A stretch of DNA of 64,000 nucleotides, from the NCBI RefSeq assembly GCF_000143415.4, contig NW_003314281.1:732833-796832 (forward strand), in the 5' to 3' direction. A program made the position numbers and the translations under genes. The notes under the pieces were generated by a model that worked only from the letters and a program-made list of their open reading frames with translations, did not search any database and was not told where the DNA came from. This DNA comes from Selaginella moellendorffii. Lineage: Eukaryota; Plantae; Lycopodiophyta. This document shows, piece by piece, positions 49,375-64,000 of the stretch (within the stretch, counting starts at the first letter, position 1; each line of letters begins with the position of its first letter).

Positions 49375-52137
49375 ATGGAGTCATCGGATGCAGCACCGCG
49401 CTTCGAGATTTGTATCGCGGTTGCGAGCAGCAAGCACAGCCCCGGGTCTGACGACGATGCTGTGGCGAGCTATATCAAGGCGTTGAAGAATACTGGCCTC
49501 GTCGTTGAGATCGAAGAGGGCTTGGATTCGATCAGATTCATCAAGGTAAGTTTGCTTATACGCTTTTGCTTTCGTTTACTTGTGGCTTTTCAGATCGCGG
49601 CACCTATCGAGGTTGTCGGTCGCACAGCGGAGAAGCTCAACATCAAGAAATCGACTTACCTTGGTTTGTTTGCCGATCGAACAAAGGCTAAAACTTTTCT
49701 CACTTTCATTCTTCCTACAGGATTAGAAGTACCATTTGTTTGGGAGAAGCGAGATGCATTTGTGCGACAAGCAATCAGCAACTCGTTGTTTACCTGGACA
49801 GAAAAATACAGTTGCATGGAGTACCTGTTGTATAGTGTGGTATGGCATCGTTTAATGCTTTCTGTTGCGGTTTGACTGGCACTTCTCTCCAGGCTAATGA
49901 GAAAGACCATCCTGTGAAGTTCACGGTGGGTGAATCATCGGAGCTAGAGCTAAAACCGGGAGAGAACATCCTTGCAGTGCTCAAGGCTTCTGAAGTTGTT
50001 AAGGATGTCTTCGTGCTTCACGGTCTGTTTCTAGCATGCAGTTGTTGCCTTTTTTATTATTTTCTTTCATTTTCTTTTCCTCAGATGAAACTACGCGTAA
50101 TGAATTGTTGAAAGGTTGGGCAATGAACTTCAAAGGGCTTACGTCGCAACCTGTAGATGCCATCCACGCGTATTTCGGTGCCAAGGTGATTGGCAATTTT
50201 TGAAAACAAGTGTGTCTTATGATGTTTAGAATTTCAGGTGGCTATATATTTTGCGTTTCTTGGAATGTATACGCAGTGGCTTGTCATTCCGTCTATAGTG
50301 GCGGCTTTCTTTTATTACAAGGAATCAAGGTAATCTCGTTTCCTTTCGCATTGCTGTGTTTCACTTAATTTTTGCTGCAGACCATGGGGAACTGCTCTCC
50401 CTGTAGTCCTTTCTGTAATGACTGTGGTTTGGTCAGTGCTCTTCTTGCAGTTTTGGAAAAGAAAAAACGCAGCACTGCTTACAAGGTTTGTTTGGGAATT
50501 AAACTTGTCTTGGCTTGATAACTCCTGAGCAGGTGGGGAGTTTCTTTAGATCGCAGCGAAGGGCCTGAGGAGGCGGAGAACATAGATTTTGCGGCGGTGA
50601 CAAACGAGGGCGGGATACAGGCAGGAAGAATCCATGAGATGGATATCAACAAGCTGCAGAAGCAGGCATTTCAGAAGAAGGAATGGCTGGAACAGCTGAA
50701 AAGTGCGAGAAATAATGCGATTGTTATTGTGGGAATCATATTCGTTCAACTTCCTTTCGAGCTTGCATACGCACACATGAACAAGATGGCATCATATGAA
50801 GTACTAAGGTGATTCTGCTGGTCTCACTGTCTCTCAAGTTTTCTTGACTTCCATCTTGCAGGTATTTTTTAACGGTGATATATCTCTTAGGAATTCAAGT
50901 GTTTACCAATCTTGGAGGGAAGATTGCAGTGAAGCTTACCAAGACCGAGCACTATGGTAGCAAAGAGGCTGAATCAGATGGACTCATCTATAAGGTAGGG
51001 TGCCATTGTTAAGTTTTTCTTCTTAAAAGCTGTTCTCGTGTACAGGTGTTTGGGATTTATTTCATGCAGTCTTACATCGGCTTGTTTTACCACGCATTGT
51101 TTCATCGAGACTTCATTGTGCTACGGCACTTCCTTGTTCAACGACTGATAATCGCCCAGGTATGGCTGCATGATTTAACAGAAAACGTCGTGAAAGCAAC
51201 ATTTTTTGTGTACAGATAATGAGCAACATTTCTGAAAATGTGGTACCATGGTTCTCGTATTTGTATGCGAAACATAAAGCTACGAAGTAAGTTTGTTTGT
51301 ATCTTAGCATTGCGTTTTAACATTCAAGCAGGCATGACGAGGAACATAAAAAATCGGATGACAAGAAAATACGCTCGCCAGTCGAAGAGGAGTATTTGAA
51401 ACCAGAATATAGTTCCAGTGTTGGAGACGATCTGGAAGATGGACTATTTGACGGTACTATTGAAATCTTACTGCCTTGGTTATATACTCACGACCTTAAT
51501 TCTTTCCAGATTTCCTAGAACTCGCGCTACAGTTCGGCATGGTTACCATGTTTGCTTGCTCGTTTCCCTTGGTCTTCGTTTTTGCTCTCATCGTAAGTCA
51601 TCTCACTCAAAACACACTCTTTTCATCATAGTTAAGCAAACCTCTTTGCTATCAGAACAATTTGGTGGAGATACGCTCGGATGCAATCAAACTCTTGCTG
51701 ATGTTTCGAAGGCCCAGACCACGAGAGGCGGCATCCATTGGAGCGTGGCTCCAAATCTTTCAGGTTTGTGTGACCCGAGAAATCACATCTCACTGCTCTA
51801 TCATATCATATTTGTTGTTGCAGTACATGGGTGTGGTGGCTATCTGTACAAACTGTGCACTGCTGGTGTGCCTATATGACGAAGCTGGCCAGTGGAACGT
51901 AGAACCGGGGATGGCCGCTATACTCGTGATGGAACACCTCTTGTTACTCGCAAAATTTGGTTTCAAGTGCTTTGTTCCTGAGGTGCGTACTTCACTGGTC
52001 ATGGAGCTCTCTCGCTCACATTGTTTTTAATCTTTCAGGAGCCCGCGTGGGTCAAGGCAAAGCGCGCGAGACGATCCCGTCTCCAGGAGAAGTACACATT
52101 GCAAATCCTGAAAGATGGAAAACATAGAGACTTGTAA
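49375..52137 (+). CDS. Anoctamin/TMEM16-like protein (multi-exon)
   Basis: [13 protein letters not shown]|[44 protein letters not shown]...RRP.PR.AASIGAW, MEHLLL. Confidence 0.92.
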
Positions 52138-52303
52138 AGGACGAGCTTTCGTAGGTTTGAAGTGTGAGCAGCTTACTCTTATACAATTTGTCACAGTTTT
52201 GGAGCTCCTGCGAAATGTTGCTACTTCTCTTTTGATCAATTCAATTTGCTCGATTACTGTTCGAAAAGAAACAAACATGAAAAAGCAAGATCGTTTGCAT
52301 GGC

Positions 52304-54797
52304 TTACCCCCACTTTCGAATGTCCAGCAGCAGGAGGACGATATCACGCATTGAAGGACGGTGAGAGACTTCCGGTGCCAAGCACCTCATCCCCAGCTCA
52401 AGGTACCAGTTGAGTTTCGCCCTGTGCTCTGGAACCAGCAGCTCCGGATCCACATGCGTTTCTATGAAGTGTTGGACGCCGCGCTTCGTAAAGCTGTTCT
52501 TGAGGAGCTGCTTCGCGGCCTGGATTGTCACTAGCCTCAGCATTACCACCCCAAAGCTGTACACATCGCTCTCCGTGGATAGAACTCCGGCTGGATCAGC
52601 GTAGTCCTGTCCAAAACGATGAGAAGCTTACAGCTTTGATTTAAAAGCCACGTACCTCGTACTGCGGCGCTTCTAACGACAATGGATACTTGATCTTTCC
52701 CTCTGAGTTGTCTCCACTCAAGAACACGGTGATTGGGTGGACGTTGCCATGAACTATCTCGAGTTCATGCAAGTGATAAAGTCCTCTTGCAGCTCCTATA
52801 GCAGTATCAATTCTTCGCGTCCAGTCTAGTGAAACACTGTTGTATCTGTGCCCTGGACACAAATCGCGTTACTCCTAGAGAAGTTGAAAACTCTTACCAA
52901 AATGGAGGTGCTCAATGAGGCTTCCCTGCGTGATGTACTCGCTCACGGTCGAGAATCGTCCTCCCTCGTTGCAATAGCCGATGAGCTTCAAGATGTTTGG
53001 ATGGTTGACTCGACAAAAGAAGTTGAGCTCGGCCTCCACAATGCCCGATGGCAAGACTTCCACAGCCACCTCCTCTCCAGTGACCAGTCTTCCCCGGTAA
53101 GCTGATCCCTCGCTCCATTTGCTCTCGTTTCTCGTCAAGGCCTCTGCGATTTCCGGCTGTGAGAACGTCCTGACTCGAGAGCTCGTTCCAAGTTGGCTGT
53201 CAAAGGCTTCGTACCAGCAGCTTCTTCCGCTTAGCACAAGCGATCGTAGACGCTTCAAACGGTCACAGATCTCTCCAAAAGTTGGCCGCTCCTCGGCATT
53301 ACGGTTCCAGCACCTCCGGATAAGTGTCGTTAGCTCCTCCGGGCAGTCCACAGGTAGCTGCGGACGCTTGTTTTCAGCACAGACCAGTATCGCAAAGTCA
53401 ATCCTTTCGATGATGTCTTCGAACGGCAGCCTTCCGGTCACCAGGTAACAGCAGATGATTGCAAAGCTGTAAACATCTGCCTTCTTCGAGTACTTTGCCT
53501 TCTCGTCCGTGTTCTCAGAGCGGAAGACTTCTGGTGCTCGGTAAATCTTTGTGCCAACTCCAACCGTGGCACTCGCAGCTTGAGACGTAGAGAAGTTCGT
53601 TTTGGCCGTGCCAAAGTCCGAGATCTTTGTGAGGATCCCAACTTCCAAGTACTTGACAAGGATGTTACGCGGCTTGAGATCCCTGTGTATGACATTCTTC
53701 GAGTGTAAGAATGCCATCCCTTCCGCTATCTGCAACATAATCGACACTGCCGTGACGAGTGGAACTCCTGCAGCCCCCTTATGCTCGCCTATAAATTTCT
53801 CCAGATCCATACTCATCCTCTCCATGACGATTGAGTACTGCTTGCCTTCGACATCACGCGTGAAGCCGATGATGCTGACAACGTTGGGATGCTGCTGCAA
53901 CGTTACCAAGGCAGTAAACTCCTTCTCGAAGCTGTAATCTCCCGGCCTGAATATCTTCACGGCAACAATTTGATCGAGCCAACCCGCTTCGTAAACCAGC
54001 CCGAAAGTGCCAGAGCCGATGAGTTTTCCCAACACCAGTTGCCTGTGGTTGATCTCGAGCTTCCCTCGGTCACCTTCCCAAAGCATGATCCTTTTGAGCT
54101 CCTCATACCCCCTTCGCCGTTTGCTCAGCTTTTCTAGAACGACGCCCTTGTCCAGAGCTGCAGCATTCTCTAGTTCACTGCGTAGACCATCCATATCAGC
54201 AACCGAAACCATAGTCATCACTCTGACATGGTATTTACTGACGTGAGGAAGATCTTCGTCTCCCAGCAGCAAAACACTCACCAGGTGTGTGAGATCCCGG
54301 AGCTGCTGGAGCACGAATTTGAATTCTTCCTCGATAAACAGCGTCCTGACCTTCCATCCTTTCCTGCTTCCCGAGGAGCTCGGGATGATCTGCAAACCCG
54401 TGTGCATGACACGCAGGAGCTCCTTGATCGCCTCGTTGCAGCTGCCTGTGCTCAAGTAGCCAGATCGCTCCCATCCTACCAGGCGGCTTGCAACCGTATG
54501 GAACGCGGAGGAAAGAAGCTTGCGCTCGGCCTCCCAGACCCCAGCGCTGGAGCTGCTAGTATCCCGAGCTCGGTCGCTGATATGAACGACACCTTCTGCA
54601 AGGCCACAAACTTGCCCGCGAGAATCTTCTGAAAGGCACCGCAACAAACACGCCATGAGAGGTGAAAGATTTCCCATCGCTACTTGCTTGTAAAGACTAT
54701 AGAGCAATCGCACCTTGAGAGTCTCGGTACAAGCTTTGTCGTATTCCTTGTGGTTTTGATCCCTGCATTGCTTGCCACGCGCGCCCAGCTTTGGCAT
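52304..54797 (-). CDS. Tandem kinase protein: DUF1221-like helical domain + active kinase + RLK-type pseudokinase; start at 54797 or 54677
   Basis: Kinase 1: GSGTFG, VAVK, HRDLKPRN, DFG, APE. Kinase 2: FSQPEI, VAVE, HPNILKLIGYC, LDWTRRI..A.GAARGL.HLH, HGNVHP, SDVYSFGVV. Three exons. Confidence 0.88.
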
Positions 54798-55404
54798 GGC
54801 TTGGATGGATGGATATATTCATGGGCGATAGCGTCCATGATCGATCCCTCCTGCAAAGAAACAGCGAAATTTTACTGTAATCCTCGCAGTCCAAAGAACA
54901 CGAAGAAATTCTACGCACAAAACAAGAAATCGACGAACTATACCGAAATTTCACGCAGAATTCGTCCCGATGTCTTCATCCGGTAGAAATTCTACGCGCA
55001 AAGCAAACCAATCCAAGAAATCGCTTTCTGGAGGAACAATACCGAGATTTCACGCAGAACTCGTCCCGATCTCGCTGGCGCTCCATCCGGTAGATGAAAT
55101 GCGAGGGCGAGCGCGAGATTAAAATGCACTCCATGGCGCGATCGCTCCATCGCGCTATCGACGCTATGCTCTAAAACCCTAGCAAGAACAAATCCCTTTT
55201 GGGGGTTTTATTGGGAAGCTTTGAATGAATGGAGGATCAGCCACCGAGCAGGGAGAATGCCGCGTGTTCGCTGCCTGATCCTTCACTTGCACTCGTTGCT
55301 CTCTCCCATCCGAGAGCAAATTCGTGCACAAATCTCTCATTCCATCCTCTAGGGCAAAGCTTTTCTTGCCCTCTCCTTCGATCGATCGATCAATCCTCCT
55401 CGCC

Positions 55405-56778
55405 CTAGGCGACGCGGCAGAGGTGAGCTCCCCAGCTCCCATCCGCATTGCAATCACCGCTAGCGCCAGGCGAGGCTCCGCCCCATCCAGGCGACCTTTG
55501 CATGATCTTGCACGACGACAATGCCGCTGGCGATGCCACCAGGAAGGAAGAAGAATTGGAAGAACAGCACGGCGGCGATCGTCCAAACAGAGAGGGTGAG
55601 CTGGTGATGGGAATCGAATTCTTGCTCGTAGTCTCACTGGATCTCATTAGGCAGAGCTCCTGGATCCCATTCATGGCGTAGAGCGACGCGGACGAGATCC
55701 TCTCGAAATTCAGCCTTCGGATTTGCTCACGCAGGATCATGTTCTCCTCGCTCTCGCTAGGGGGGAGCTGGAGATCGCTGGGAGCCTCTGGTAAGCCCGT
55801 GATCGCCGAGAGCTCTTCGAACTGATCGCTGCCAGGCATGGACATGTCCACCGAGAGATCAAAGAGCGACGTGTAAATGGAGTCGCCCTCTCCGCCACTC
55901 TGGACGACCAGCTCTTCCAGCCCCGAGAGAGTGTCGCTAAGATCATCCGAGCTGGCTGGAGAGTTCCGGCAATCGAGCTCCTGGGCTCCTGGAGGAGGAG
56001 CTCCTGGAAGAACTTCCATAGCCGCTACTCCAAAGCCGTCAAAGGTGGTAGCCATACTTCCCTGGTGATCGCTCATCCCTGGCGTGGTTTTGGCAGTGAA
56101 GAGATCGCGCTGCTGCTCTTGGTGGTGGAAGAACTTCGGGAAGCCATCGTTGGCGAGCAAGGTGGTGAAGGATTGGACGTGGAGTGGCTGTGCCTGGACG
56201 TTGCCGAGCTCTTCCTCGTCGCCAAAGTAGTGGAGCTGGTTAAAGCTGTAAGTCATGGCTTGAGCTTCGTCTTCCCCTTTCTTTGGAGCTACAGTGCATG
56301 GATTTGATGAGCTCTTCCCTCTGGCCGATTTCAGGCGCTGGTGGAGCGTCCGCGCGGCCTTGGACGGAAGAACTGAGCCGCTCGAGGGCGATGCCGCCGG
56401 TAAGAAGTTCGTGCGCGTGTTGACGCCCCGGAGCATGCAAGCCGCCTCGTCGTAAGCTCTGGCGGCGTCCTCCGCCGTGTCGAAAGTCCCCAGCCATAGC
56501 CGGATCTTCTGCGTCGTGTCTTTGATCTCCGCCACCCAGCGCCCCGACGATCTTTGCCTCACTCCCACGAACTTCTTCTTCCTTCTCCCGCTCGGCCTGC
56601 TGCTGCTACCAAGCTTCTCGCTGCTGCTCAGCACTGCCTCTCTTTCCAGTGACTCCGCTTGTGGCTTGAGCCTCCGCTGCTGGTACTTTCGCCTCCCGGT
56701 CTCGAGTCTATAGAAGGGGAAGCTCGCGTCTTGATCTTCTCCATCTCCAGCGAAAGATAGCACGCTTTGTTCCGACAT
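55405..56778 (-). CDS. AP2/ERF transcription factor, ERN1-like
   Basis: [31 protein letters not shown]...[12 protein letters not shown], plus C-terminal [17 protein letters not shown] motif; intronless. Confidence 0.9.
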
Positions 56779-58463: not shown

Positions 58464-60773
58464 CTATCCTGCGTCGCAAGAAAAAGAGATTTGCAACAAG
58501 AGAGTGTAGGCCGAGGCCAGCGACGGAGCTCCCGGTGGAAACAGAAGAACGAGGTGGCGGAAAGACTCTTGGCCTCGACACAGATCGAGCTGATCCTTGG
58601 CGCACCCCAGCAGCGTCTGCCACGCCAGAGCATTCGGCTCAAAAGGCATGCACTCGAGCAGCTCGTGTGCCTGTGAAAGCTCCCCCGCCCGAGCCAGTGC
58701 ATCGATCAAGCACACATAGTGCTCCAGGCTCGCTGCAACTCCGGCAAAATCCCTCGCTGCCACTGCAGCGAAGAGCGCCATGGCATGGACGAGATGCCCA
58801 GCTTGGCTGCAAGCGGCCAGGAGAGACACGAAAGTGATGGCGTCCGCCTGGATCCCTTGCAGCTGCATCGTGCCAAAGAGATCCAAAGTCTGCTCCAGCG
58901 CCGCTGGAGTGAAACAGGCCGAGCCATTGGCAGCGATGAGCGTGCTCCAAGTCACTACGTCCCGGGCCTGCGCTTGCATGGCGTCGAACACCTCCCTCGC
59001 GGCCTGGAGCATCCCACGCTTGGCGTACATGTTGAGCACCGCGTTCGCCACCTTCGTCACCTGGGCCAGGAGCCGGCCATCGTCCACCTCGGCTATGATC
59101 TCGTGCACTCCACGCATCGCGCTGAGGCTGCTCTCGCTGCTCCCGCTCACTGCCTCGACCAGGCTCACGTAGCTGACATCGTCGAGCTTCACGCCTTCCA
59201 GATCCATGGCGCAGAATGTGGCCAGTGATGCCCGGCTATGCCCGGCTTGGGCATACGCCGAAACGATGGTGTTCCACGACACGGTGTCCCGCTCGTCCAT
59301 GGCATCGAAGGTGGCCTTCGCCTGCTCGATGTGCCCGAGCTGGGCATACGCCCCCGCCACGATGTTCCACAGCACCACGTCTCGAGCAGGTACTCTGTGC
59401 ATGGCCGCGTTCAGGGCGTCGTCGCTGCACACCGCCAACAGGCTCGTCCACGACACCAGATCCCGCTCGGGCATCTCGTCGAAGAGCAGCTTCGTCCCCG
59501 GAGAGTCTCCGGCACGGCTGTAGCCGGCGAGCATGGCGTTCCAAGCTGTGACATCCCAGCAGGCCATCCTGGTGAAAACTTCCCTGGCCAGGTCTAGATT
59601 CTTGGGACTGTGTTGCTGCTCCGCTAGCGCCATCACCATCGTCGTCCAGGAGAACAAGTCCCGGTGATAGCACAGCTCCTGGCTTGCAAACATGCTCGCG
59701 GCCCCTGGAAGATCTCCGCCCCTAGCAGCTGCATGGAGGGCGACGTTGCGAGCCACCAGGCTATGGGACGGGATCTTGCCCAGGAGCTGCTCCAACACGA
59801 CCAAGCTCCCAGCCGCGGCAGTAGCTCTGGCGACGAGCACCCACGACAATGCATCCCTCTCGCGCATCCTGTCAAACACGAGCTTGGCATCATCCGGCAT
59901 CCCATGGCTGCCGTAGGCCGCGATGAGTGCATTGCAGGTGACAAGGTTGTGGAGCGGCATTGCATCAAACACGGCCTTGGCTTGCTCCGTGCAGTGATTC
60001 TCGACGTAAGCTTGCATGAGCGAGTTCCACGAGACCACGTCCCAGGCCGGCATTCGCTCGAACACGGCAGTGCAGCGCTCGAGGTGGCCGGAGAGCGCAC
60101 AGGCCGAGATGAAAACGTTCCAGCTCACGCTGCTGCGCTCGGGCATGGCCTCAAACACGGCCCGCGACTCGTCCAGCTTCCCGGCCCGCGCCAGCGCCGC
60201 CACCAGCGTAGTGCACGCGACGGCATTCCACCCCGGCATTTGCCCACAAACGAGCGCCGCCTCGTCGGCTTTCTCGGCACGGGCAAATGCTGCAGCGAGG
60301 CTCGCCCACGATATCACGTTCCTCTCAGGCATCTCGTCGAAAACACTCTTCGCCTGCATCGCTGCGCAGTCCTCGCCGAGCGCCCATAGCATGTCGTTCC
60401 AGGACACAATGCTGCGGAGGGACATCTTTTGAAAAGCATCTTTCGATCCTTCCATATGCCCAGACTGGGCAAATGCATGAAGCAGGATGTTCCACGAGAA
60501 GACATTGCGCTCCTGAAGACTCGTAAACACCAACGTCGCCTCCTCTAGCCTCTCAAAGCTGCCATACATCCTAACGAGAAGATTCCCAAGGAAGGTGTCT
60601 CCGCCATAGCCACGCTTGATTATCTCGGAGTGCAACCTCTTCCCCTCGTCAAGATCCCGGCATCCTCTCAACCGCTGCCCGTAGTCATCCGTCACGTATG
60701 AGAGCTTGATTCCACGAGAGAAAATGCGGAAGATCCAGGAAGGTCTTTGCCTCGTATCAATCCATGACCACAT
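58464..60773 (-). CDS. PLS-class PPR protein rich in short (S/SS) repeats, E-like end
   Basis: Long intronless ORF with tandem ~31-aa 'VFDxMPxRxxVSW' repeats and HYVCLIDALARAG...MPFEPNALAW; start codon uncertain. Confidence 0.9.
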   Translation of the reverse strand: MWSWIDTRQRPSWIFRIFSRGIKLSYVTDDYGQRLRGCRDLDEGKRLHSEIIKRGYGGDTFLGNLLVRMYGSFERLEEATLVFTSLQERNVFSWNILLHAFAQSGHMEGSKDAFQKMSLRSIVSWNDMLWALGEDCAAMQAKSVFDEMPERNVISWASLAAAFARAEKADEAALVCGQMPGWNAVACTTLVAALARAGKLDESRAVFEAMPERSSVSWNVFISACALSGHLERCTAVFERMPAWDVVSWNSLMQAYVENHCTEQAKAVFDAMPLHNLVTCNALIAAYGSHGMPDDAKLVFDRMRERDALSWVLVARATAAAGSLVVLEQLLGKIPSHSLVARNVALHAAARGGDLPGAASMFASQELCYHRDLFSWTTMVMALAEQQHSPKNLDLAREVFTRMACWDVTAWNAMLAGYSRAGDSPGTKLLFDEMPERDLVSWTSLLAVCSDDALNAAMHRVPARDVVLWNIVAGAYAQLGHIEQAKATFDAMDERDTVSWNTIVSAYAQAGHSRASLATFCAMDLEGVKLDDVSYVSLVEAVSGSSESSLSAMRGVHEIIAEVDDGRLLAQVTKVANAVLNMYAKRGMLQAAREVFDAMQAQARDVVTWSTLIAANGSACFTPAALEQTLDLFGTMQLQGIQADAITFVSLLAACSQAGHLVHAMALFAAVAARDFAGVAASLEHYVCLIDALARAGELSQAHELLECMPFEPNALAWQTLLGCAKDQLDLCRGQESFRHLVLLFPPGAPSLASAYTLLLQISFSCDAG

Positions 60774-62355
60774 ACACAACGATGATCCAAAACGAAACAC
60801 TCACCAAAATTCTTCATCATCGCATTGCAGCGACAACTCCGGTATGCTTGTCAAGCTCTCAACCTCGCGTAGCATGTTACCGGCAAATGGCGACCATCTT
60901 CCAGGATGCAAACCGCTAGTTCTAATTTCGCTGATCAAGGCTTGCAGCCATCAAGCTCTGCGAGAGAACTGGACCCAGGTTGATGGTCAGCTCGTCAAGA
61001 TCACGTCCCTGGAACAGGCTATGGCACTACACTCGCAGGCCTCGCTCCAAAATCTCGACTGGAACGTTTACGTGGCCAGCAGCCTGGTGGATGTTTACGC
61101 AAAGTGTGGCACCATGCACGACTCGCAGTGGGTCTTCGATTCCATCCCGCAGCGCAACGTTGTATCGTGGACCTCGCTCATCGCGGGATATGCCCGGAAC
61201 GGGCATGGCACCACCGCGCTGGAGAGGTTCCAGGAGATGCATTCCAGGGCCCGGGCAGCTCCAAACGCTCAAACTTTCGTCGCTGCTCTTCAAGCCTGCG
61301 CTGCCATCCTCGAAGAAGGGTGCGGCAAAGATCGCGTTCTTGAGACATGCATGGCTCTCCACTTTCGCGCTGCAAAGCTGGGCCTCGATTCGGATGTTTT
61401 CCTTGCGAACAGCCTCGTGGATGTGTACTCCAGGTCCGGAAGTCTCGAGGACGCTCGCAGAGTGTTTGAGGGAATGCCGAACCGGGATGTGGTAAGCTGG
61501 AACTCCATGATGGCTGCATTCGCTCTCCACGGGCATCCACAGCAAGCTCTCGATTTGTTTGTCGGCATGAAGTTCCAAGGCTGTGCTCCCAGCGCTCAAA
61601 CTTTCGCCGTCTTGCTAAAGGCCGCTGCCAAGCTCGGAGCGTTGCAGACCGGGAAGATACTCCACGCGGAGATTTCTCGGTACTGCTGCTTGGATCCTGA
61701 GCTCCAGACGAACTGCTTGGTGGATTTCTACGGCAAATGCGGGAGCATGGTCAATGCCCAACGAGTTTTCGATTCCACGAGCTCCAGTGACTGCTCCATC
61801 GTGACTTGGAACTCTTTGCTGGTCGGATATAGTCGCCAGGGAGACACCACCCGCGTCTTTGCTCTTTTCGAGGCTCTCGATCGAGTAGCTTTGAGGCCGA
61901 ATGGAGTAACTTTCTCGGCTCTTCTCGCGGCTAGCAGCCACGCCGGTCTCGTCGACAAGGGACTCGAGCACTTCCACTCGATGCTCTCCAGCTATGGAGT
62001 CTCTCCCGACGCTCAGCACTGCCGTTGCATGGTGGACGTGCTGGGACGAGCAAACCGGCTGGAAGAAGCCGTGCAGATGGCGAACATGGTGCCCTGGAGC
62101 TCGGTCGCTTGGGTCACTCTCCTTGGTGCTTGCCACAAGTGGAAGAACGTAGAAGTCGGGCGGCTGGCTTTCGATACTTTGCTGAGAAGTCGAGAGCCTG
62201 TTGCGATCTCGTGCTACGTGATGATGGCCAGTATCTATGGAGCCGCGGGAATGTGGGAGAAGAAGCTGGAGATCGATGCAATGAGGAGTAAGGCCGAGGA
62301 CGATGGTCGAACGAGAGATCATCGCGAAGGAGAGTTTGAGCTTCGTCCGGCGTAG
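60724..62355 (+). CDS. PLS-E PPR protein; start at 60724 or 60844
   Basis: P-L-S repeats and HCRCMVDVLGRAN...YVMMASIYGAAGMW E-domain; no DYW. Confidence 0.9.
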   Translation: MRKIQEGLCLVSIHDHIHNDDPKRNTHQNSSSSHCSDNSGMLVKLSTSRSMLPANGDHLPGCKPLVLISLIKACSHQALRENWTQVDGQLVKITSLEQAMALHSQASLQNLDWNVYVASSLVDVYAKCGTMHDSQWVFDSIPQRNVVSWTSLIAGYARNGHGTTALERFQEMHSRARAAPNAQTFVAALQACAAILEEGCGKDRVLETCMALHFRAAKLGLDSDVFLANSLVDVYSRSGSLEDARRVFEGMPNRDVVSWNSMMAAFALHGHPQQALDLFVGMKFQGCAPSAQTFAVLLKAAAKLGALQTGKILHAEISRYCCLDPELQTNCLVDFYGKCGSMVNAQRVFDSTSSSDCSIVTWNSLLVGYSRQGDTTRVFALFEALDRVALRPNGVTFSALLAASSHAGLVDKGLEHFHSMLSSYGVSPDAQHCRCMVDVLGRANRLEEAVQMANMVPWSSVAWVTLLGACHKWKNVEVGRLAFDTLLRSREPVAISCYVMMASIYGAAGMWEKKLEIDAMRSKAEDDGRTRDHREGEFELRPA

Positions 62356-64000
62356 CTGTTTGCCAGTAGCACAAAGGCCGCGCCATCTTTTTCCTGGATC
62401 CTCTCGAAGGCTGCTCTTCCAGCTTCTACGTTTTCCCACTTTCGACTTGATGCCAGGATGCTCGTCCAGATGGTGGAGTCCGGCTCCATAGGCATGCTTT
62501 TCACTACAGCCAGTGCCTCCTCAAGATGGTTCGCGCGACCTAGGAGATCGACCATGCACGAGTAGTGCTGGATCGTTGCATACTCTCTGTAGTCCTCGAG
62601 CAGTGCGTGAAAGTATTTCCTGGCTTGGTCGACGAGTCCAGTGTGGTTGCAAGCGCTGAGCACCGAGAGAAAAGTCACACCATCGGGGCGTATCTTCTCG
62701 TGCTGCATGCGCTCGAAGAGATCGAAGACCTGGCAAGCGTCACCCTGTTGGCTATAGCCGGAGATGATCGCGCTCCAAGTCACTAAATCTCTCCTCTTGA
62801 TGGGAATGGCGTCGAAAACTGCTCGGGCTTCTTCCATGCACCCACATTTGCCGTAGAAAGTGATGAGAGAGTTTGCAATGACAAGCTCACTTTGGTGATC
62901 CATATAACCACTTCTGCTTCGAATCTGTTCGTGAACTCGTCTTCCTCTCTCGAAGTCTGCGAGATTTCCACACGCCTTGATAACAGCCACGAAAGTCCGA
63001 GACTCCGGATGCAACTGCTGCTGAATCATACTCTCGAACAGCTCCAAAGCAGTGCTGTTCTCCCCAAGCTCGGCATAGCCCAGGATCATCGATGTCCACA
63101 TCGCTAGCGAAGAACTTCCCAGCATCACACTCCTGTCAAAGACCGACCGAGCCTCCCCAATGCTCCCGCAGTTGGCATACATGTCCACCAGAGAATTCGC
63201 CACGAAAACATCTGGCTCGTGTCCCTTGTTCCTGAGCTCCAAGTGTATCAGCCGGCCTCTCTCGAGTGACTTGAGCTTGAGAACTCGAGCATCCCCACCG
63301 AGCTCTCTTCCTTCTTGGGCTGCGAGGCTAGAGCAAGCGTTGAGTGCTGCAACATAAGTTCGAGCCTGCGGTGTCAAACCTTCCTCTTGCATAGCCGTGA
63401 AGAGCTCCAGAGCCGCATCACTCTCGCCATTCTGTACGCATCCAAGAATCATGGTCGTCCAAGAAACTACGTTTCGTTGCTGCATCTCCTCGAACACCTC
63501 TCCAGCCTCAGCTAAGCTTCCACACTTGGCGTACATGTCCACGAGCGAATTTTCCACGTATATATCAATCGCTACCTTACGTCCCAGATTTTTAAGCCGT
63601 AGATGGATAGCTCGGCCCTTTCCAAGCGACACCACCTTGACTAGCTTCCCATTTACTTTCTCTGCTTCTTCCGCTGAAGCCAAGCTTGAGCAAGCACCTA
63701 TCGCGGCGACGAAGGTCCGAGCATCTGGATCGACACCCTGGTCGAGCATTCTCGAAAACATCTCTAGCGCTTGCTCGCCGTCACCGCTCTGTGCGTAGCC
63801 ATGTATGATAGAGTTCCACAGCACCACGTCGTGGTGACTTGTCTGCTCAAACACTGCTCGAGCCTCGAGCATGCTCCCACACTTTGCAAGCATGTCCACG
63901 AGACTGTTTCTTACGAAGGCATTGAGCTTCTGGCTGTTGTCACTCGTTTGGAGAAGCGACTGTATGCTCCTGCCTTTCCTGAGAGCCTCGACCTTTACAA
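62319..64000 (-). CDS. PLS-E PPR protein; 5' end outside the window
   Basis: Frame open to the window edge; HYSCMVDLLGRAN...MPMEPDSTIW...FVLLANSY. Confidence 0.92.
   Translation of the reverse strand, partial: VKVEALRKGRSIQSLLQTSDNSQKLNAFVRNSLVDMLAKCGSMLEARAVFEQTSHHDVVLWNSIIHGYAQSGDGEQALEMFSRMLDQGVDPDARTFVAAIGACSSLASAEEAEKVNGKLVKVVSLGKGRAIHLRLKNLGRKVAIDIYVENSLVDMYAKCGSLAEAGEVFEEMQQRNVVSWTTMILGCVQNGESDAALELFTAMQEEGLTPQARTYVAALNACSSLAAQEGRELGGDARVLKLKSLERGRLIHLELRNKGHEPDVFVANSLVDMYANCGSIGEARSVFDRSVMLGSSSLAMWTSMILGYAELGENSTALELFESMIQQQLHPESRTFVAVIKACGNLADFERGRRVHEQIRSRSGYMDHQSELVIANSLITFYGKCGCMEEARAVFDAIPIKRRDLVTWSAIISGYSQQGDACQVFDLFERMQHEKIRPDGVTFLSVLSACNHTGLVDQARKYFHALLEDYREYATIQHYSCMVDLLGRANHLEEALAVVKSMPMEPDSTIWTSILASSRKWENVEAGRAAFERIQEKDGAAFVLLANSYAGRSSNSPSR

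Follow-up and report, generated by a model that had tools for sequence, protein, structure and literature searches.

Could the parts of two kinds of plant immune protein be joined in one protein of a seed-free plant? The question is raised by a gene of the lycophyte Selaginella moellendorffii on the minus strand of contig NW_003314281.1, within a stretch of 64,000 nucleotides that was analysed as a whole (the window, whose own numbering is used below). The gene has a coding span of about 52241-55134 and is expressed and spliced. In RefSeq the product of the locus, which is also the best database match of its open reading frame (ORF), bears the name 'dual specificity protein kinase pyk3' (XP_024533722-26). 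The encoded chain was found to consist, in this order, of a predicted MLKL-type four-helix bundle with a brace, a TKL kinase (K1) and a pseudokinase derived from the RLK/Pelle family (K2). Plant MLKLs and tandem kinase proteins (TKPs) are recently recognised immune classes outside the NLRs that have been studied almost exclusively in Arabidopsis and cereals. The Selaginella gene carries defining parts of both classes in one expressed lycophyte chain.

Gene structure and transcripts

Do the bundle and the two kinase domains truly belong to one protein? The longest ORF (52875..54797, 640 residues) holds the helical N-region, a complete kinase and the beginning of a second kinase-like domain, and K2 is continued by two more ORF pieces (52641..52862 and 52304..52564). 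Contig sets from four public runs (at least three studies) were mapped to 52100-55300; that they stem from RNA was at first a guess. The contigs can be taken as spliced RNA because the segments that they skip all have GT..AG ends on the minus strand, as do all seven splice sites, alternatives included. Two RNA contigs, one covering 54433 to 52308 and one reaching from 54144 past 52100, both have the three K2 introns spliced out. Since single contigs bridge K1 and all K2 exons, K1 and K2 lie on one mRNA and the fusion is real. The fusion had been proposed in a first-pass annotation of this DNA, and the contigs indeed continue past K1 through K2 rather than ending after the first kinase. The full-length splice form is present in the main contigs of three of the four runs.

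The RefSeq proteins lead to the same structure. XP_024533722-26 (P0243, P0241, P0246 and P0244) are identical to the exon translations from the window, and a second isoform set from another contig, which represents the other haplotype (P0001, P0242 and P0245), is 96% identical. The cluster formed at 90% identity consists of these two isoform sets on two contigs, the two haplotypes of the assembly. The RefSeq models agree exon by exon, and the reading frame is kept in both haplotype copies; together with the GT..AG splice sites, the intact frame on both haplotypes argues that the architecture is not a chance ORF. There is a single copy per haplotype, and contig sets of at least 10 studies steadily include it. 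In the first JGI annotation, only the K2 part was modelled, as a separate partial gene (EFJ26157). For the searches and folds described below, spliced K2 was examined through the RefSeq proteins P0001 and P0241 and through individual exons, without joining the exons of the window. The gene is built as follows.

52100..55167, minus strand: transcribed span according to RNA contigs, with the 3' end beyond 52100
About 55043..55167, minus strand: first exon, with 5' untranslated region (UTR) and the annotated start ATG at 55134 (MECIL...); alternative donor at 54944
54851-55042 (192 nt) or 54851-54943 (93 nt), minus strand: first intron, GT..AG in both forms
54714..54850, minus strand: second exon, with the in-frame alternative starts MNISIHP (isoform X3) and MQGSKPQ
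54629-54713 (85 nt) or 54626-54713 (88 nt), minus strand: second intron, with a NAGNAG acceptor that includes or omits one Glu (isoforms X1/X2)
52898..54628, minus strand: large exon encoding bundle, brace, K1, linker and K2 N-lobe (RNA contigs and RefSeq)
53192-52898, 52852-52656, 52606-52308 and 52256-52241, minus strand: K2 exons, the last a terminal exon of 16 nt
52853-52897 (45 nt), minus strand: K2 intron of phase 1, after ...HLHF (RNA joints, GT..AG)
52607-52655 (49 nt), minus strand: K2 intron of phase 0 in the remnant of the activation segment, retained in one contig
52257-52307 (51 nt), minus strand: last intron; when unspliced, the protein ends in ...KWG, four residues shorter
52241-52243, minus strand: stop codon TGA, in the tiny last exon

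The limits first given for the finding, 52304 and 54797, do mark the ends of uninterrupted ORFs but are not the ends of the gene, which has further 5' exons and the tiny last exon. Three in-frame starts are available: MECIL (55134), which requires the 192-nt intron, MNISIHP (X3) and MQGSKPQ. With the 93-nt first intron, the MECIL frame meets a stop and becomes an upstream ORF. The MPKLG start (ATG at 54797) was considered and rejected, as it is out of frame once intron 54629-54713 has been spliced out. A second start, 'MGNLSPLMAC' (54648-54677), had been suggested to be lipidated; it lies inside the same intron, is present only in one low-depth unspliced contig, and has to be given up. As no in-frame start begins with Met-Gly, N-myristoylation is not supported. 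The NAGNAG variants recur across isoforms, with P0242 and P0243 on one side and P0001 and P0241 on the other.

Several further features of the transcripts were observed. A tandem duplication at 54920-55080 covers the 3' end of the first exon and its donor site (...ctgcgtgaaat[c/t]tcg followed by gtat... across the junction), giving rise to the two alternative first introns of 192 or 93 nt. In isoform X4 (659 residues, part of the annotation of both haplotypes), the acceptor lies 7 nt within the second K2 exon (52845-52852), which shifts the frame and leads to a stop after the K2 N-lobe; the X4 joint is absent among the joints reported from the four runs. In the brace-coding part (54179-54228, minus strand), exactly 50 nt are skipped in contigs of three studies, with the non-canonical ends TG..CA on either strand. 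Beyond about ORF residue 190 the skip puts the sequence out of frame, and other contigs from these runs retain the 50 nt; an unusual splice, an allelic difference or an artefact could each explain it. Lastly, an RNA contig of 4595 nt extends about 2.7 kb past the stop toward lower coordinates, which reflects either an extended 3' UTR or overlap with the transcript of a neighbour.

Domains of the encoded chain and their relatives

What do the three parts resemble? Their positions, and those of the motifs on which their assignment rests, are listed here.

54048-54626, minus strand: helical N-region (residues 58-250 of ORF 52875..54797; AlphaFold2)
54261..54623, minus strand: four-helix bundle, HeLo-like, with AlphaFold2 helices at N-domain residues 2-25, 32-54, 61-80 and 91-122
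54072..54242, minus strand: brace helices between bundle and kinase, AlphaFold2 helices 129-140, 145-169 and 171-185
53256..54035, minus strand: K1, a TKL-group kinase (Pfam PK_Tyr_Ser-Thr, residues 255-514, E 6e-54)
53994-54017, 53949-53966, 53664-53687, 53601-53618 and 53526-53543, minus strand: K1 Gly-loop, VAVK, HRDLKPRN, DFG and APE motifs, from the translation
53136..53255, minus strand: K1-K2 linker, ending in an RLK-type juxtamembrane-like motif (R.FS..EI..A.T), as aligned to the RLK consensus and SymRK
52241..53192, minus strand: K2, the RLK/Pelle-derived pseudokinase (sequence, tree and AlphaFold2 fold)
53052-53069, 52728-52751 and 52680-52697, minus strand: degenerate K2 motifs, namely VAVE, an HGN catalytic loop and KYP replacing DFG (against the RLK consensus)

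The N-terminal helical region is present as first described, and AlphaFold2 predicts for it a four-helix bundle followed by three brace helices, at moderate confidence (predicted local distance difference test, pLDDT, 73). Among PDB structures, the best matches of the predicted fold were MLKLs, namely AtMLKL2 (6lba; score 13.8, 180 residues), the executioner domain of human MLKL (6zz1, 6zvo, 6ux8 and 2msv; 12.8-13.6, 137-147 residues) and AtMLKL3 (6ka4; 12.0, 181 residues). The alignments with AtMLKL2 and AtMLKL3, at 180-181 residues, span through their brace. Foldseek with the helical model gave no significant E-values, MLKL entries surfacing by TM-score alone, and a shape search of the ESM-Atlas was weak (top family-bearing row a fungal SesA, TM 0.51). 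Pfam searches with the ORF, the N-domain and the RefSeq protein gave no match to DUF1221 (PF06760), MLKL_N (PF22215) or MCAfunc at E up to 1, and a word-index search with the N-domain returned only the gene's own cluster.

Closer relatives make the family likeness visible. The N-domain was aligned in 27 sequences, comprising 25 moss, fern and other kinase relatives and the two Selaginella copies. MLKL_N is passed by 15 of these 27 N-domains and DUF1221 by three, and Asp159 of the brace is invariant throughout. A profile of the 25 non-Selaginella N-domains matches residues 93-229 of the ORF (E 3.9e-8 for one target, 19 bits), and hhalign gives E 4.7e-5 with a probability of 68% across helices 1-4. 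Full-length alignments with moss relatives are colinear through the N-domain. A search by language-model features, which is independent of the alignments made here, placed the N-domain next to PUB10_N/DUF7792 (0.93), MCAfunc (0.91), RPW8 (0.89) and MLKL_N (0.86-0.88), all neighbours being from Streptophyta. These families are taken to be plant helical-bundle families of the N-domain's kind. On the basis of profile, language model and predicted fold, the N-region is accepted as a putative diverged bundle of the MLKL_N/MCAfunc/DUF1221 type with a brace. The resemblance to DUF1221, MCA and MLKL proposed in the first-pass annotation therefore stands as a placement in this group, but formal membership in Pfam DUF1221 or MLKL_N does not, as the region falls below threshold.

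K1 has the complete catalytic motif set, namely GSGTFG, VAVK, the alphaC Glu, HRDLKPRN, DFG and APE. Its best sequence matches in the PDB are AtMLKL2/3 (5-6e-34), marginally before EGFR and Raf kinases. The earlier description of an intact Raf/TKL-like kinase is borne out, with all motifs present and AtMLKL2/3, then Raf, closest among solved structures. In a FastTree phylogeny of 83 kinase domains, with no grass sequences in the trees, K1 falls within a clade of 48 rows (support 99), 38 of which come from bundle-bearing proteins; the clade stands apart from oomycete and protist TKLs, and K1 is separated from the RLKs with a support of 100. The nearest relatives of K1 are moss, fern and lycophyte proteins. 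This result indicates that the bundle and K1 belong to a large family of bundle-kinases of seed-free land plants.

The N-terminal bundle is detectable by profile in about 88 of K1's best 119 database relatives, and the bundle-bearing ones come from Sphagnum, Ceratodon, Physcomitrium, Adiantum, Diphasiastrum and metagenomes. About 40 of the same 119 have two kinase domains of TKL type, and many K1 relatives carry an extra C-terminal module (a second TKL kinase, PP2C, Sel1, jacalin, LRR, ARM or TPR). In one of them, P0010 of Sphagnum troendelagicum (938 residues), the N-domain profile matches at 1-185 and again at 504-670, each match being followed by a kinase, the second of which has HLD for HRD; this protein is a bundle-kinase module doubled within one chain. 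The family of moss, fern and lycophyte bundle-kinases to which K1 belongs is large and essentially undescribed, and many of its members have additional C-terminal domains. In the literature searched, this family has received only a passing mention, as 'MLKL' hits of NLRtracker (PMC11218826).

The second kinase domain is of a different origin. Its motif states were scored against a consensus of 40 RLK domains, and its searches used residues 555-822 of the RefSeq protein. Relative to the consensus, the Gly-loop has a deletion of 6 residues, VAIK has become VAVE, HRD has become HGN, the Lys and Asn of the catalytic loop are His and Thr, and KYP stands in place of DFG. The activation loop has lost 13 residues, and APE its Glu. 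All five catalytic motifs (GxGxxG, VAIK, HRD, DFG and APE) are thus lost or deleted, which makes K2 a pseudokinase. The shrunken RLK/Pelle pseudokinase of the first-pass annotation, lacking Gly-loop, catalytic Lys, HRD and DFG, was confirmed by this comparison. Kept in K2 are the alphaC Glu, the RLK scaffold motifs (LDW..R..GAARGL.YLH, SDVYSFGVV and RPSM) and the juxtamembrane-like motif that precedes it. In the tree, K2 was placed inside the RLKs with a support of 100, at the level of the RLKs rather than of any one subfamily. Its PDB sequence matches are SymRK (1.7e-24), Pto, PBL2, BRI1, BIK1, FERONIA and IRAK4, and its best database relatives are kinases of the LRR-VIII (HPCA1-like), CrRLK1L and RLCK groups at 28-35% identity, those of LRR-VIII and CrRLK1L at 31-35%, with no closer homologue in the search. 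The AlphaFold2 model of K2 has a pLDDT of 84.5 and a predicted TM-score of 0.86, and Foldseek places it nearest to SYMRK, BRI1, FERONIA, LYK3 and IRAK4 (E 1e-20 to 1e-18). K2 should therefore be incapable of phosphotransfer by the usual chemistry, yet is predicted to fold as a kinase. The 'VAVE' that K2 shares with PDB 6m0u was dismissed as a coincidence, 6m0u being a K625E mutant. Between the haplotypes, 3 of about 270 residues differ in K2, about 7 of 275 in K1, and 7 in the N-domain. K2 is thus not visibly decaying when compared with K1, these counts being too small for a test.

Is this design unique to Selaginella? A bundle, a TKL kinase and an RLK-type second kinase were also found in a protein of the moss Ceratodon purpureus (M758_2G183000, P0027) and in one of the fern Adiantum capillus-veneris (GOP47_0016691, P0046). 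The moss protein aligns with the Selaginella protein in a single alignment of 599 columns across K1, linker and K2, at 32.6% identity. HRD is retained in the second kinases of both proteins; that of the moss has DFS for DFG, and that of the fern has the full motif set. The first kinase of the fern protein is without a catalytic loop in the gene model. At this fern locus (L002, 6001-9613) the roles look swapped, the RLK-type second kinase being motif-complete and intronless. In the moss gene (locus L001), one K2 intron matches Selaginella intron 52853-52897 in place and phase, and another is one nucleotide off from 52607-52655. A further moss intron (L001, 8261-8565) lies in the Gly-loop of the second kinase, where Selaginella K2 has its 6-residue deletion.

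The second kinases of Selaginella, moss and fern all fall inside RLK/Pelle with a support of 100, and a single clade for the three is not rejected by the approximately unbiased (AU) test (p 0.12). A single origin of the whole design in moss, fern and lycophyte was considered and set aside, as monophyly of the K1 domains is rejected (AU p 0.0009, for a group named post hoc). The simplest reading of these sequences is that RLK-type domains were fused repeatedly to bundle-kinases, the moss and fern gains being separate; one old fusion with many losses is the alternative.

Possible working of the protein

How might such a chain work? The reading that we tentatively prefer, and regard as a serious if not quite probable one, is that the protein is a self-contained intracellular switch of the MLKL/kinase-fusion type, with K2 as its input, K1 as the switch and the bundle as its output. 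At rest, the bundle would be kept packed and inactive by the brace and the kinase region, as in AtMLKL tetramers. K2, which would mimic the cytoplasmic domain of a receptor kinase, would serve as the input module, as a bait or a docking surface. Binding or modification of K2 by a pathogen effector or a partner kinase would alter the contact between K2 and K1, and K1 would next phosphorylate itself or the brace. The freed bundle would then oligomerise and act on a membrane (ion leak, Ca2+ entry, cell death), or might signal defence in another way. That a moss and a fern have the same three-part design, apparently by separate gains, argues for an advantage in combining a bundle-kinase with a receptor-type kinase domain.

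Several observations weigh against such a switch. An exhaustive phmmer search with the N-domain against 1.84 billion representatives returned zero matches at E 0.001. The N-domain lies below the Pfam thresholds, its family placement resting on profiles and on the moderate-confidence model (pLDDT 73), and the fold and profile evidence are not independent because the AlphaFold2 alignment contained MLKL_N relatives. Executor bundles are usually located at the extreme N-terminus; here 18-76 extra residues precede the bundle, depending on the start codon used, and this leader is unstructured. The annotated isoform X4 truncates K2. Between the window and the RNA contigs, synonymous and non-synonymous differences number 11 and 7 in K1, 6 and 4 in the N-domain, and 2 and 3 in K2, the K2 counts being too few to gauge constraint. 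A motif scan of the six frames of the window detected no NB-ARC or TIR signatures; with NB-ARC lacking, nothing in the genomic surroundings points to an immune pair.

Other roles for K2 can be weighed against the proposed switch. RLK pseudokinases and RLCKs pair with the kinase domains of membrane receptor kinases. K2 may likewise be a docking module for a true membrane receptor kinase, in which case the protein would be a downstream transducer and its bundle an attachment to membrane or cytoskeleton. The retained RLK scaffold, the juxtamembrane-like motif and the well-predicted kinase fold of K2 fit this possibility, as do the second kinases of the moss and fern analogues, which keep HRD (in the fern all motifs) and could be active RLK-type partners there. 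For the AtMLKLs, moreover, immunity can be uncoupled from cell death, and an association with microtubules has been described (10.1101/681015). However, no transmembrane or receptor gene is linked within the window, the activation segment and P+1 region that kinase pairs often use are mostly deleted in K2, and sequence alone cannot separate docking from the bait model. Docking is accordingly held to be possible but not likely. A little less likely still is that K2 regulates K1 only, in the manner of JAK JH2 on JH1, with a non-immune role in stress or development and the bundle as an old family feature without an executor role. Kinase-pseudokinase tandems do regulate themselves elsewhere (JAK analogy, PMC6170490), no NLR motif was found in the 64-kb window, and a single copy per haplotype with contigs from at least 10 studies looks more housekeeping-like than a fast-evolving receptor would. 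Yet the plant bundle-kinases that have been studied (AtMLKLs, Pm13 and R3AK) all act in immunity according to the literature, and repeated fusions of RLK-type domains to bundle-kinases are more easily explained by sensing or decoy than by self-regulation.

Could K2 contribute nothing at all? It might be all that is left of an RLK or RLCK gene that was captured and is decaying, with the bundle and K1 as the functional product, as in X4. K2 is without any catalytic motif and has two internal deletions, one annotated isoform terminates within it, and the first JGI annotation had it as a separate partial gene. But its frame is intact over three spliced exons on both haplotypes, it has fewer amino-acid differences between haplotypes than K1, its fold is predicted confidently (pLDDT 84.5) with the structural core motifs conserved, and the main contigs of three of four runs contain the full-length splice form. 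A mere remnant thus appears very improbable.

What would follow if the proposed switch were correct? With the bundle as executor and K2 as input, the protein would be a compact, testable model that could show how an MLKL-type bundle is governed by a kinase switch in the absence of a helper NLR, and how early land plants recruited decoy-like domains. A more general claim, which is doubtful at present, is that seed-free land plants repeatedly built single-chain immune proteins of sensor, switch and executor by placing a receptor-kinase-derived domain on an MLKL-type bundle-kinase, and that in Selaginella this domain was reduced to a pseudokinase bait. If this were true, the protein would unite the MLKL and tandem-kinase receptor classes in an NLR-independent hybrid, and the integrated-decoy logic of the cereal kinase fusion proteins would also have arisen outside flowering plants, in seed-free lineages. 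If bundle and K2 do not have these roles, the gene remains a clear example of recurrent domain fusion, and the uninformative 'pyk3' annotation is corrected.

The neighbourhood of the gene holds other coding sequences. About 240 nt upstream of the first exon of the kinase gene lies the end of an intronless ORF of 457 residues (55405-56778, minus strand), in which an AP2/ERF DNA-binding motif was recognised by eye. Three large ORFs of PPR type (778, 549 and 526 residues), recognised by eye from their repeat pattern, lie on alternating strands at 58464-63899, and a UGT-like fragment lies at 48.6-49.1 kb.

Comparison with known systems

Animal MLKL is a pseudokinase that is activated by a separate kinase, RIPK3. 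In comparison, the Selaginella chain has an active-looking kinase built in and an unrelated pseudokinase appended. The plant MLKLs (AtMLKL1-3; PDB 6lba and 6ka4) share with it a HeLo-type bundle, as predicted here, and a multi-helix brace. They have been described 'across seed plants', and in AtMLKLs the HeLo bundle alone causes cell death and is buried by brace and pseudokinase (10.1101/681015). The kinase domain of the AtMLKLs is a pseudokinase without the residues for phosphoryl transfer, whereas Selaginella K1 has all catalytic motifs; their C-terminus is a serine-rich tail, whereas that of the Selaginella protein is a folded RLK-type pseudokinase. AtMLKLs pass Pfam DUF1221 and were presented as a family of seed plants, while the Selaginella protein is below the Pfam threshold and its host is a lycophyte.

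The MLKL-K or 4HB-kinase fusions of grasses (Pm13 and R3AK) are alike in joining a bundle, a brace and a kinase with complete catalytic residues in one chain. These fusions have originated repeatedly, and kinase-dependent execution of cell death has been proposed or shown for them (PMC10951266, PMC11297308, 10.64898/2026.08.07.743466). Pm13 combines a bundle with an active kinase and causes kinase-dependent cell death (PMC10951266, PMC11297308), which its brace-kinase fragment also sets off (PMC11297308). The grass MLKL-Ks have a single kinase and no C-terminal pseudokinase, unlike the Selaginella protein with its K2. They have been reported from Poaceae only, whereas Selaginella K1 lies in a clade of seed-free bundle-kinases, in trees that hold no grass sequences.

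The cereal TKPs (Rpg1, WTK1/Yr15, Sr62, RWT4 and WTK3/Pm24) resemble the Selaginella protein in that a kinase is followed by a pseudokinase of RLK/Pelle origin in one cytoplasmic chain, and some of them arose by fusion of unlike kinases (PMC6170490, PMC8761531). For Sr62 and RWT4, effector binding frees the pseudokinase, according to the summary given in 10.64898/2026.08.07.743466. The analogy to cereal tandem kinases drawn in the first-pass annotation holds for the architecture of kinase and pseudokinase, but K1 is a TKL rather than an RLK-derived kinase. In TKPs both domains are RLK/Pelle, and no other domain was present in the 2018 set; in Selaginella, K1 is of TKL/MLKL type and a bundle is added. 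Several TKPs require a linked NLR, whereas the 64-kb window of the Selaginella gene yielded no NLR motif. The combination of bundle, active TKL kinase and RLK pseudokinase was not found in the literature searched. The Selaginella gene is annotated but uncharacterised, and it combines kinds of plant immune protein that have so far been described separately.

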